Source of the DNA: Schizochytrium sp. TIO01
Taxonomy: Eukaryota; Protista; Bigyra: Labyrinthulomycetes
DNA length: 23,822 bases
Assembly: GCA_004764695.1 (NCBI GenBank)
Contig: SMSO01000027.1
Location: 1-23,822, forward strand
Reading direction: 5' to 3'
In this document: piece by piece, positions 11,310 to 23,330 of the stretch
Layout: every line of letters begins with the position of its first letter
How positions within the stretch are numbered: the first letter of the stretch is position 1
Position numbers and translations under genes: made by a program
The notes under the pieces: model-generated
Seen by the model: only the letters and a program-made list of their open reading frames with translations
What the model was told of the DNA's origin: nothing
Database searches by the model: none

Positions 11310-13189
11310 AATATTTCATTAACCACTAAAGATACTAATCATCAGGTGGTACCGTTGGAAAGCTGTTAAGATTTACAATAGGCCAGATGTGTTTTCTCAG
11401 GCGAAATATGTTTAAAATTTATTTTTATTGACCTTTGAATGTTATTTCTTGGTCTCTCATATTATTAATAGGGGGAGGGAACAAGTTTAGTAGTGTTGTA
11501 ACTCTATGCATATAATAGACAGAACTTTGCTACAAACACCGTCGGATAGCTGAATAATAGTTAAAGTGGGTGCATTTGATTTATGAGAGAAAATCTTCTT
11601 GCAAGCCTGAGAAAACAAGCTCTAAGTTGGCACTCTATTTGTGAGCAGAAAAATGATTAGTATAAGGTTCATTTTCTCAACAACGGGAAAAGATATTACT
11701 CATCAGGTGGTACCGTTGGAAAGCAGCTTTAATTGGCAACAGGGTACATGTGTTTTCTCAGGCGAAATGTTTTTAAAATTTATTTTTACTGACCTTTGAA
11801 AGTTATTTCTTAGTCGCCCATATCATTTATAGGGAGAAAGAACTGAGTTTAGTAGTGCTCTAACTCTATGAATAGAATAGAAAGAACTTTGCTATAGGCA
11901 CCTCTTGATAGAACACGAATTGCTAAGATGCCTGAATTTGATTTACGAGAGAAAAGCTTCTTGCAAGCTTGAGAAAAGAAGCTCCAAGTTATTACTCTGT
12001 TTATTGGCAGGACAGAGAATTAATGGTTAGTATAAGATTCATTTTCTTAACAACGGGATAATATATTAATTATTGAAGTGTACCATTGGAAAGCTGGTTA
12101 AATTTACAACAGCTTGAATGTGTTTTCTCAGAAAAAATACTTTAAACATGCATTGTACTGACCTTTAAAAGTTATTTTTTTTGTCTCTCATGTTATTAAT
12201 AGGGGGAAGGAACTGGGTTAGTAGTGTTGTATCTCTATAAATACAATCGACAGAGCTTTTCTACAAACATCATTCGATAGTTTATGAAGTGTTAAGATGA
12301 GTGGATTTAATTTATGAGAAAAAATGTTCTTGCAAGCTTGAGAAAAGAAGCTCTAAGTTGTCACTCTATTTGATAACAAAAGAAAGAATTAAATGATTAG
12401 TATAAGATGCATTTTCTCAACAATGGGGAAAGATATTAATCATGGAGCGATACTGTTGGAAAGCTGTTAAGAACTACAATAGGTTAGATGTGTTTTCTCA
12501 GAAAAAATACTTTAAACATATAGTTTTACTGACCTTTGGAAGTTTATTTTTGGTCTCTCATATTATTAATAGGGGGAAGGAAACGAGTTTAGTAGTGTTC
12601 TAACTCTTTGAGTAGAATAAACAGAACTTTTCTACAAACACAATTCGATAGCTCAAGAATTGTTGAGATGGCCGCGTTTGATTTATGAGAGAAAAGCTTC
12701 TTGCAAGCTTGAGAAAAGAAGCTCTAAGTTGTCACTCTATTTGATAACAAAAGAAAGAATTAAATGATTAGTATAAGATTCATTTTCTCAACAACGGGGA
12801 AAGATATAAATCATGGACTGGTACCATTGGAAAGCGGCTTGAAATTGCAACAGGGTAGATGTGATTTCTCAGAAAAAATACTTTAAACATATAGTTTTAC
12901 TGACCTTTGAAAGTTTGTTTTTTGTCTCTCATATTATTAATAGGGGGAAGGAACCGAATTTAGTAGTGTTCTAACTCTATAAGTAGAATAAACAGAACTT
13001 TTCTACAAACACAATTCGATAGCTCAAGAATTGTTGAGATGGCCGCGTTTGATTTATGAGAGAAAAGCTTCTTGCAAGCTTGAGAAAAGAAGCTCTAAGT
13101 TGTCACTCTATTTGATAACAAAAGAAAGAATTAAATGATTAGTATAAGATGCATTTTCTCAATAATGAAGCAATTTATTAATCATGGAG
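11310..13189. repeat. Subtelomeric spacer repeat family C (about 370-bp unit), segment 1
   Basis: GGTACC-type marker at 11348, 11709, about 12079, 12449, 12820. Shared blocks TCTCTCATATTATTAATAGGGG, TTTAGTAGTGTT, TTGCAAGCTTGAGAAAAGAAGCTC. Confidence 0.95.
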
Positions 13190-13658
13190 TTTTGTTGAAT
13201 GCTGTAGAGTGACAGAGACTCGAAAGGTTGTTTACTTTTTAGGTTGAGGTTGTATAGTTTGAGGTCTGCTGACATACTGCCGGCAGTGAAGAAGTTATTT
13301 CTACTCAGTCTCTGTTACACATGTCCTTTATTAGTGGCGGCCACCGAGCGGAAAACCGCAACTACTAGTGTTTAGTCCATGTGTCCCTTAGTGAGTATTT
13401 GTTTTCTTGATAAAGATTCTCCTACGTTCTTTGATACTTTTACAGTGGTATTATGGGTTAATACTCGTGTTCATGTATATAATTCACGAGCATTACCCTA
13501 ACCCTACTACTGTAAAAGGTATAATAAGAAAGTTAAGAGATTCTTTGTTGTCCAATGCTTAACCTTTACCCTAACCCTACCTCTGTAAAAGGTATGATTA
13601 GAAAGGCAGGAGACTCCTTGTTATCCCGACTCGGGACCAACAATTCGTCTAGACAACA
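13190..13658 (-). mobile_element. Solo LTR of the Ty1/copia family at 15533-21452
   Basis: 466-bp TGTTG...CAACA core (13193-13658) plus TTT, about 99% identical to the element LTRs. 5-bp TSD TGGAG at 13185-13189 and 13659-13663. Removing 469+5 bp restores the 371-bp repeat period. Confidence 0.96.
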
Positions 13659-20983: not shown

Positions 20984-21452
20984 TTTTGTTGAATGCTGTA
21001 GAGTGACAGAGACTCGAAAGGTTGTTTACTTTTTAGGTTGAGGTTGTATAGTTTGAGGTCTGCTGACATACTGCCGGCAGTGAAGAAGTTATTTCTACTC
21101 AGTCTCTGTTACACATGTCCTTTATTAGTGGCGGCCACCGAGCGGAAAACCGCAACTACTAGTGTTTAGTCCATGTGTCCCTTAGTGAGTATTTGTTTTC
21201 TTGACAAAGATTCTCCTACGTTCTTTGATACTTCTACAGTGGCATTATGGGTTAATACTCGTGTTCATGTATATAATTCACGAGCATTACCCTAACCCTA
21301 CTACTGCAAAAGGTATAATAAGAAAGTTAAGAGACTCTTTGTTGTCCAATGCTTGACCTTTACCCTAACCCTACCTCTGTAAAAGGTATGATTAGAAAGG
21401 CAGGAGACTCCTTGTTATCCCGACTCGGGACCAACAATTCGTCTAGACAACA
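20984..21452 (-). repeat. 5' LTR of the copia element
   Basis: TTT+TGTTG (20987) ... CAACA (21452); adjacent to the PBS and 63 nt from the gag ATG. Confidence 0.97.
21258..21430 (-). promoter_or_regulatory. Putative U3 promoter/enhancer of the 5' LTR
   Basis: TATATA (about 21270-21276) inside a CTCGTG...CACGAG inverted repeat. In element orientation it follows two 73-bp direct repeats, each carrying GTAGGGTTAGGGTAA. Confidence 0.5.
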
Positions 21453-23330
21453 GGAGTGATACCATTGGAAAGCGGCTTGAAATTACAACAGGGTAGATGT
21501 AATTTCTCAGAAACAATACTTTAAACATATAGTTTTACTGACCTTTGAAAGTTTATTTTTGGTCTCCCATATTATTAATAGGGGGAAGGAACCAAGTTTA
21601 GTAGTGGTCTAACTCTTTGAGTAGAATAAACAGAACTTTTCTACAAACACCATTCTATAGCGCATGGATTGTGGAGATGGCCGAATTTGATTTATGAGAG
21701 AAAAACGTTTTTCAAGTTTGAGAAAAGAAGCTCTAAGTTGTTACTCTATTTGTTGGCAGGATAAAGAATAAAATGATAAGTATACGATTCATTTTCTCAA
21801 TAATGAAGCAATATATTAATCATGCAGTGGTACCGTTGGAAAGCTGATGCAATTTACCACAGGGTAGATGTGTTTGCTCAGAAAAAAAAAATATGACTAT
21901 GTTTTATTGACTTTTGAAAGATATTTCTTTGTTTCTCATATTATTAATAGGGGGAGAAACCGAGTTTAGTAGTGTTATAACTCTATTACTAAAAGAGACA
22001 GAACTTTGCTACAAGCACCATTCGACAAATCATGAATTTTTAAGATAACCGCGTCTGATTTATGATTGAAAATATTTTTGCAAGCTTGAGAAAAGAAACT
22101 CCAAGTTGTTCCTCTATTTATTAGCAGGATAAAGGGCAAATTGAATAGAATAAGATTCAATATCTCAACAATGAGATAATATATTAATCATCGAGTGGTA
22201 CCATTGGAAAGCTGCTTGCATTTACAACAGGGTATATGTGTTTTCTCAGAAAAAATACTTTAATATATAGTTTTACTGACCTTTGAAAGTTTATTTTTTG
22301 TCTCTCATATTATTCATAGGGGAAAGAAACAAGTTTAGTAGTGTTCTAACTTCATCAATAGAATAGACAGAGCTTTACTACAAGCGCCATTCGATCGCTC
22401 ATGAATTGTTAAGATGCGTGTATTTGATTGATGAGAAAAACTCTTCTTGCAAGCTTGAGAAAAAGAAGCTTCAAGTTGTCACTATTTGTGAGCAGGATAA
22501 AGAATAAATTGATTAGTATAATATTCATTATCTCAACAATGAGATGAAATATTAATCATCGAGCGGTACTGTTAAGGGGCTATAAAAAGGCGTGACTAAT
22601 GACCACTCGTCAATACCTAGTATACCCCGGTCCCATATATAGATTATCTCTTGACAGGTACCATTGGAAAGCTGGAAACATTTACAACACGGTAGATGTG
22701 CTGGTTCAGAAAAAAAAAAAATTATGGTTTTGTTTTTATTAACTTTTGACAGATATTTCTTAGTCTATCATATTATTAATAAGGAGAAAGAGCTGAGTTT
22801 AGTAGTGTTCTAACTTTATCAATAGAATAGACAGAAGTTTACTACAAGCACCATTCGATCGCTCATGAATCATTAAGATACGTGTATTTGAATTATGAGA
22901 AACAACATACCTGCAAGCTTGAGAAAAGAAGCTCCAAGTTGTCACTCTATTTGTGAGCAGGATAAAGAATTAAATGACCAGTATAAAATTCATTATCTCA
23001 ACAATGAGATAATATATTAATCATCCAGTGGTACCATTCGAAAACTGGAAACATTTACAACAGGGTAGATGTGTTGGTTTAGAAAAAAAAAAATATGGTT
23101 TTGTTTTTATTAACTTTTGAAAGATATTTCTTAGTCTCTCATATTACTCATAACCAGAAAAGGGAAACTTTGTAGTGTCATCAATCTATCAATCAAATAG
23201 TTAGTAATTTTCTACAAGCACCATTAGAATGCATCACAACTCATCGACGATCAACGTTGAATTATGGTGAGAGAATAGTTTTACAAATTAGACATAAGTA
23301 CTTCCATCATATTACATGCTATTCTTATTG
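21453..23330. repeat. Subtelomeric spacer repeat family C, segment 3 (last unit degenerate)
   Basis: Markers at 21458, 21829, 22197, 22565/22657, 23030; similarity decays after about 23150. Confidence 0.92.
22570..22656. mobile_element. 87-bp miniature solo-LTR-like insertion (second family)
   Basis: TG...CA ends, imperfect terminal inverted repeat (TGTTAAGGG / CTCTTGACA), perfect 5-bp TSD GGTAC (22565-22569 and 22657-22661), TATAAAA at 22581. Absent from all other family C units. Confidence 0.8.

Follow-up and report, generated by a model that had tools for sequence, protein, structure and literature searches.

A copia family and an unrelated miniature LTR element with a probable preference for the rDNA-telomere spacer of a thraustochytrid

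Contig SMSO01000027.1 of Schizochytrium sp. TIO01 (assembly GCA_004764695.1), analyzed over its full 23,822 nucleotides and called the window here, carries insertions of two unrelated retrotransposon families with long terminal repeats (LTRs), a Ty1/copia family and a 364-bp terminal-repeat retrotransposon in miniature (TRIM). Both families probably integrate almost only in the spacer between the 28S rRNA gene and the telomere, through region-level targeting similar to that of yeast Ty5. This spacer is found at essentially every chromosome end. The insertions are confined to this zone, display many independent target-site duplications (TSDs), occupy random phases of the repeats that they enter, and include recombinant elements. 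Active targeting to a chromatin or protein feature, and not to a DNA motif, would account for the confinement. The copia family is young and apparently active. The window is contig C26 of a 37-contig, 64-Mb assembly, the sole assembly used, and other contigs are numbered in the same way. Its insertions are listed below.

13190-13658, minus strand: solo copia LTR of 469 bp, with the perfect 5-bp TSD TGGAG
15533-21452, minus strand: full-length Ty1/copia element, with LTRs at 15533-16001 and 20984-21452
15909-20921, minus strand: uninterrupted open reading frame (ORF) of the copia element, encoding a polyprotein of 1670 amino acids (aa)
22570-22656, minus strand: solo 87-bp LTR of the TRIM, with the TSD GGTAC

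A genome search with the 469-bp copia LTR yields 40 candidate matches, comprising 36 full or near-full-length copies, two fragments, and two weak, distant matches. Host flanks were extracted and then aligned to the window with its elements masked, and phases were assigned on a consensus of the 371-bp repeat unit, counted from the first G of GGTACC or GATACC. Of the 36 copies, 35 have readable flanks, as do both fragments (at C13:57648, the left flank is N). Every readable flank aligns within positions 7707-23142 of the window, which correspond to the 28S-telomere spacer. By coordinate, all 36 LTRs and both fragments are located either downstream of a 28S end, at a distance of 1-17 kb, or inside a convergent pair of such ends. 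A 40-mer of the 28S 3' end occurs 102 times in the genome, and many of these ends form convergent pairs, 13.9-28.8 kb apart, deep within multi-Mb contigs (C7, C8, C12, C13, C24, C30, C31, C33, C34, and C36). These pairs indicate that chromosome ends are joined head to head in the assembly. Seemingly interior LTR positions are therefore chromosome ends, and a contig coordinate is not a distance from the telomere.

The TRIM follows the same pattern. Flanks were examined for about 45 of its 64 LTR copies and map to the 28S-telomere spacer in every case, the remainder being placed by coordinate; 58 of the 64 lie inside the zone by coordinate. No insertion of either family is found in the rRNA genes or the telomere repeat. 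The spacer upstream of the 18S rRNA gene is likewise free of both families (no copia flank lacks a match within 7707-23142). With 10-20 kb per 28S end, the zone amounts to 1-2 Mb, or 1.6-3% of the 64-Mb genome. All 17 independent copia events fall inside it, for which uniform insertion would give a probability of about 0.03^17. The location of all readable copia flanks and all examined TRIM flanks supports the coarse idea of a first-pass annotation of the window, which had proposed subtelomere-directed retrotransposition. Mapping both LTRs in the one assembly thus upholds confinement to the spacer (all copia copies and 58 of 64 TRIM LTRs), whereas the phases are random, an outcome that the annotation had named as speaking against its proposal.

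Seventeen distinct perfect 5-bp TSDs are seen in the copia family, and the TRIM has as many distinct TSDs of its own. These numbers imply many independent integrations in each family, not one insertion spread by recombination. The target sites are distributed over the three tandem repeats of the spacer as follows.

Copia, 412-bp repeat: C12 (TSD CTCCT)
Copia, 532-bp repeat: C13:4046950 (TSD ATTAT) and C13:45001 (TSD AAATA)
Copia, border of the 532-bp and 371-bp repeats: C36 (TSD TATTC)
Copia, 371-bp repeat (all other TSDs), site starts on the consensus: -145, -127, -126, -107, -106, -49, -46, -6, -5, +16, +27, ~+68, +108, +150 (three times), +161, and +178
TRIM, 412-bp repeat: C31:9036058
TRIM, 532-bp repeat: C24:5798021 (TSD GTCTT)
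TRIM, 371-bp repeat (13 different sites among the 17 distinct TSDs): -156, -48, -18, -17, -3, 0, +45, +55, +56, +77, +108, +119, and +157

Further TRIM insertions are located 150-300 bp past the 28S gene and about 190 bp before the telomere. Relative to the 371-bp repeat, seven copia insertions are on the plus strand and 9-10 on the minus strand; the C3 copy faces its telomere, whereas the window copy faces away from its own. The shared orientation of the two window copia insertions, which the first-pass annotation had stressed, is real but does not extend to a genome-wide bias. Similarly, the rDNA and the 412-bp and 532-bp repeats are free of elements in the window, as it had stated, but both families enter these two repeats elsewhere. 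The TSDs have an A+T content of 79% in copia and 70% in the TRIM, compared with 67% for the spacer, and no sequence consensus is found around the TSDs.

Spread of one or a few old insertions between chromosome ends by subtelomeric recombination is an extremely improbable source of this distribution. Some TSDs and flanks are indeed common to several ends (AAAAG on C16, C13:62884, and C24:23855; TATTT on C27 and C25; the TRIM TSD CTATG on C33 and C16). In the window, moreover, GATACC-type units, a variant that makes up 15 of 130 distinct units, adjoin both the solo LTR and the full element on the right. Against this, each family shows 17 different TSDs at different positions, so recombination accounts for only a minority of copies. 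The single old insertion that the first-pass annotation had set against its own proposal is not borne out by this count.

In the window, the junctions of both families fall within 27 bp of the repeat unit. The solo copia LTR is flanked by TGGAG at 13185-13189 and 13659-13663 (phase -6 to -2), and the 87-bp LTR by GGTAC at 22565-22569 and 22657-22661 (phase 0 to +4). The full element has no TSD; its left flank is GGCGC at +16 to +20 and its right flank GGAGT at -5 to -1. The first-pass annotation described the coordinates, duplications, and phases of all three correctly and proposed a protein- or chromatin-defined landing pad, which would capture both families in one orientation within about 27 bp around GGTACC of the 371-bp unit. 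Besides the four window junctions at -6 to +20, such a pad would fit a TRIM at another chromosome end (C33:4851472, TSD AGGGG at -3 to +1). It would also fit the LTR haplotypes, which suggest different source copies for the solo LTR and the full element, yet the right junctions of the two are 1 nt apart. That TRIM is, however, the sole event of its kind: of 26 events outside the window, the other 25 map to different parts of the unit (one in -6 to +20 compared with 1.6 expected, P = 0.81). Among these, no copia event falls in the interval, and the nearest is at +27. Both orientations occur, the 412-bp and 532-bp repeats are targets although they lack the pad sequence, and the junctions of the full element are half-sites of a recombinant. 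The census largely refutes this model, which is very unlikely to be correct.

More general forms of site preference were also considered. The tests applied show no departure from uniform phase, and the largest empty arc, 57 bp, is close to that expected for 30 random points. For a general hot-spot model, pair-distance statistics reveal no excess at 3 or 5 bp and none between families, and cross-family site coincidences are no more frequent than expected by chance at any of the distances tried (P = 0.4-0.5). Neither concentration at one repeat position nor a fixed orientation is observed. The four window junctions within 27 bp are a chance cluster of partly non-independent members, which ectopic recombination between copies makes more conspicuous. 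The chance figures behind the landing pad can be reproduced, 4x(27/371)^3 = 0.0015 and 3x(27/371)^2 = 0.016, but provide no evidence beyond chance. The full element has no TSD and its junctions are half-sites of different events, and the interval was picked after seeing the data and fails out of sample. In addition, the solo LTR and the right junction of the full element may go back to a single old insertion.

Judged from its flanks, the full element is a recombinant in which half-sites of different insertions have been brought together. Uninterrupted paralogues of the left-flank unit (C12 and C23) read GGTACCCTTGGAAAGAGGCGC followed directly by CGATTTGCAACAGG, not GGAGTGATACC. The left junction is therefore a true half-site at +16 to +20, and the right flank GGAGTGATACC stems from a different site, located about 345 bp farther on in the unit. 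A missing TSD with discordant flanks, some even inverted, is found in three of 13 full copia copies (the window, C30, and C7:1.11 Mb), which indicates that ectopic recombination between copies is common. On the right, the solo LTR and the full element both adjoin (T)GGAGT followed by GATACC. A simple duplication of one insertion by recombination of the array, which would have produced the solo LTR as well as the element's right LTR, was considered and rejected on the LTR haplotypes. The two LTRs of the element have two private variants in common, and the solo LTR differs at five positions, the last being position 372 of 469. The unit after the full element is 90% identical to the unit before the solo LTR and 85% identical to the unit after it. 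Two histories are possible: an independent insertion at the right junction, 1 nt away from the solo LTR's site, or a crossover of the element's right LTR with a solo LTR already in place, somewhere in the final 97 bases, over which the two are identical. The window thus contains three, perhaps four, independent integration half-sites.

The gag-protease-integrase-reverse transcriptase (RT)-RNase H order, together with a copia-type RT, places the window element in Ty1/copia (Pseudoviridae). The polyprotein consists of gag with two CCHC knuckles, a protease with DSG, an integrase with HHCC, 10-aa repeats, RVT_2, and RNase H, and the CCHC, DSG, and HHCC motifs are readable in the translation. RVT_2 matches at aa 1144-1374 with E = 4e-17, over the curated cut-off. 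Upstream of the RT, there are weak matches to rve (aa 583-635) and gag_pre-integrs (aa 526-565). Direct LTRs, 5-bp TSDs throughout the genome, a polypurine tract (PPT), and a stretch resembling a primer-binding site (PBS) beside the LTRs are also as expected of Ty1/copia elements. The complement of the PPT occupies 16002-16017, the PPT itself being GAAGTTTGGGGAGGTG, and the PBS-like GGTTATTGGCC adjoins the 5' LTR (~20966-20983). The latter approximates the complement of the tRNA-iMet anticodon arm with one mismatch and is a putative primer site. The half-tRNA-iMet primer site GGTTATGGGCCC has no match elsewhere in the window. C23:2250-5361 is an internally deleted 3.1-kb copia derivative without gag, protease, and integrase, and it contains the perfect form of the PBS-like stretch (the complement of GGGCCCATAACC).

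The LTR, in element orientation, starts with TGTTG (TG) and ends in CAACAAAA rather than CA (13190-13197, 15533-15540, and 20984-20991). In every copy, the canonical CA is followed by three additional A. Each of the 17 copia TSDs directly abuts these extra bases, and the integrated U5 end is thus not CA. The two LTRs of the full element differ at one of 469 positions. Across the genome, 13 full-length copies are at least 99% identical, and 12 of them have intact frames of 1675-1695 aa. Within LTR pairs, identity is 99.8-100% (0-1 nt), and all LTR copies but one are at least 98% alike. The ORF extends about 30 codons into the 3' LTR (15909-16001), which results in short protein matches at solo LTRs.

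Six tandem 10-aa repeats of the EVPDLISIDQ type (aa 929-993; 17946-18155) separate the integrase core from the RT. Copies vary by whole 10-aa units, giving frames of 1675, 1685, and 1695 aa, and the repeat segment is just 95-96% identical among copies with 100% identical RT. The repeats were considered as the signature of a tether and set aside, as weakly similar blocks in copia families of chromosome interiors show that they are not specific.

The 87-bp LTR has 64 genomic copies, often in pairs or triplets spaced 277 bp. This spacing identifies it as the LTR of a 364-bp miniature LTR element (87 + 190 + 87), whose core begins with GATTAAGAGTC beside the LTR. Short LTRs around a non-coding core with a putative PBS and PPT, together with 5-bp TSDs, are characteristic of TRIMs. 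Tandem triplets of the form LTR-core-LTR-core-LTR occur at C24:27388-28028 and C12:21435-22074 and are expected from unequal LTR recombination. At C34:1934-2712, a copia solo LTR has a 364-bp TRIM (TSD GTCTA) inserted 7 bp from its end. The copia LTR itself (TSD CTCAT, phase +108) occupies the same site, with the same TSD, as the TRIM insertion C31:3185328.

The window itself appears to be a chromosome end of an Aurantiochytrium limacinum-like thraustochytrid, judging from the arrangement of the following features.

1540-3324, plus strand: 18S rRNA gene (Rfam)
3410-3560, plus strand: 5.8S rRNA gene (Rfam)
3712-7056, plus strand: 28S rRNA gene (Rfam), with the proximal border of the insertion zone at its 3' end
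8047-9712, plus strand: 412-bp tandem repeat, four units (family A; LORE-TEARS group 1)
9699-11276, plus strand: 532-bp tandem repeat, three units (family B; LORE-TEARS group 3)
11278 to ~23400, plus strand: 371-bp tandem repeat array C, ~16 units (LORE-TEARS group 2)
Starts of the 371-bp units (first G of GGTACC): 11348, 11709, 12079, 12449, 12820, 13665, 14036, 14403, 14774, 15143, 15512, 21458, 21829, 22197, 22657, and 23030
23447-23822, plus strand: telomere (TTAGG)75, the distal border of the insertion zone

The rRNA genes (1540-7056) are transcribed in the direction of the telomere. Array C is broken up by the solo copia LTR, the full copia element, and the 87-bp LTR. With the elements subtracted, the spacer from the 28S 3' end to the telomere measures 9.9 kb. 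Its GC content is 0.33, compared with 0.475 for the copia element, and that of the spacer upstream of the 18S gene is 0.36-0.39. A. limacinum MYA-1381 has TTAGG telomeres and rDNA at all chromosome ends (10.1101/2023.06.15.545109). Its LORE-TEARS groups 1, 3, and 2 have units of about 406, 529, and 366 bp (Collier et al., 10.1101/2023.06.15.545109), close to the 412, 532, and 371 bp of the window. The order of rDNA, group 1, group 3, group 2, and TTAGG telomere is the same in both. The words retrotransposon, LTR, and copia have no occurrence in the text of that preprint (10.1101/2023.06.15.545109), and elements that break up the repeat arrays, as in the window, are not described in it.

Targeting of both families to the spacer, the probable explanation, would begin with an integration complex guided, as in yeast Ty5, to some feature of the chromatin or proteins of the 28S-telomere spacer. 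Ordinary, essentially sequence-independent strand transfer inside the domain would then produce 5-bp duplications at AT-rich sites. The sites would be scattered across all three repeat families without phase or orientation specificity, and frequent ectopic recombination between copies would follow.

Retention alone would instead mean random integration followed by selective removal of insertions outside the gene-free spacers. The compact genome is compatible with this explanation, and the insertion-free rDNA beside the zone fits selection there. Retention is nevertheless unlikely to be sufficient. The similarity of the copia LTRs described above marks a very young family, which would have had little time for purging selection. 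Not one of the 36 copies is found in intergenic DNA elsewhere, and the AT-rich spacer upstream of the 18S gene is no exception. Furthermore, other copia families (RT 29-32% identical) keep long open frames in chromosome interiors, hundreds of kb from any rDNA (C5:1081216, C5:1446431, and C31:4304240), C5 having 28S ends near its two termini only. Interior insertions are thus tolerated. These three points favor targeting over retention.

Other copia families also occur near chromosome ends. A second family, with 1671-aa frames, is likewise within the 28S-telomere zone (C21:3594-13028, C36:5014327, and C8:146361), and a third tends to be found upstream of the 18S gene, at a distance of 2-10 kb (C33:1923021, C33:2036795, C34:2882835, and C30:15726). 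Different copia families may therefore occupy different subtelomeric compartments.

A preference for the DNA or its state, without a tether, is somewhat more plausible than retention, though still doubtful. The attraction could reside in AT-rich, bendable, or nucleosome-poor satellite DNA or in a state of replication or transcription termination past the rDNA. The A+T content of the TSDs of both families, the slight overabundance of site pairs no more than 1 bp apart, and the start of the zone within about 150 bp of the 28S end are consistent with this explanation. It does not predict the lack of a consensus around the TSDs, and the equally subtelomeric, insertion-free spacer upstream of the 18S gene argues against it.

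Several observations weigh against targeting. Strong selection, or a preference for some property of the spacer DNA (GC 0.33), could produce the same distribution as active targeting. No targeting domain is identified in the copia polyprotein, which has no Ty5-like LxSSxP motif, and the repeats C-terminal to the integrase are weakly matched in copia families of chromosome interiors. Six of the 64 TRIM LTRs are outside the zone by coordinate (C35:876038, C31:3097723, C31:3101928, C4:223423, C5:59344, and C13:3024). Site pairs within 1 bp number eight compared with 3.5 expected among 30 sites (P = 0.03, uncorrected). At most, these reflect weak micro-hot-spots, including one at -6 to +4 with four junctions from two families, which would be compatible with the mild A+T preference of the TSDs. 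Finally, a single assembly was examined, with chromosome ends joined head to head.

Targeting of this type has precedents among retrotransposons. Ty5 of Saccharomyces is a Ty1/copia element whose integrase has a C-terminal domain for targeting, which binds Sir4 at telomeres and at the silent mating loci. The window family resembles Ty5 in belonging to the copia group, in its 5-bp TSDs, and in its confinement to a subtelomeric domain, inside which no sequence, phase, or orientation specificity is found. The two differ in that the target here is the rDNA-telomere spacer at all chromosome ends of a stramenopile, in the absence of an LxSSxP-type motif, and in that tethering is here presumed. Ty5 retargeting is among the subjects of PMC7459421, in which the C-terminal domain of Ty1 integrase is described to bind AC40, common to Pol I and Pol III. 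By analogy, this shared subunit makes it conceivable that a tether downstream of the rDNA is linked to Pol I. Ty1 is also a copia-group element and is steered to a safe haven by a short C-terminal segment of its integrase. Its insertions are found upstream of Pol III genes and show nucleosome periodicity, whereas no tRNA genes are involved here and insertions reach across about 16 kb to the telomere. TRAS and SART, in the TTAGG repeats of Bombyx, and R1 and R2, in 28S genes, are non-LTR elements with target-specific endonucleases. They likewise occupy a telomeric or rDNA-associated safe haven, and Bombyx telomeres are also TTAGG. However, they use one defined sequence in one orientation, whereas 34 target sites in both orientations are seen here. 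The elements here are LTR elements with a DDE integrase, and neither the telomere repeat nor any rRNA gene contains one.

Detailed knowledge of region-targeted integration is limited to a few LTR elements, most of them in yeasts. The landing-pad claim, which would have been the more surprising, does not hold. A broader proposal can be put forward only tentatively: a stramenopile copia integrase may have independently evolved a Ty5-like tether to a chromatin or protein feature specific to LORE-TEARS. These spacers would serve as a safe haven common to several LTR families at all of about 52 chromosome ends, and ectopic recombination of copies would help to reshuffle and homogenize those ends. 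If targeting is confirmed, a mobile-element component would be added to the published picture of rDNA-bearing chromosome ends. A young copia family with intact ORFs, restricted to one 10-kb compartment per chromosome end, would then offer a tractable case of region-targeted integration in a culturable, transformable protist.

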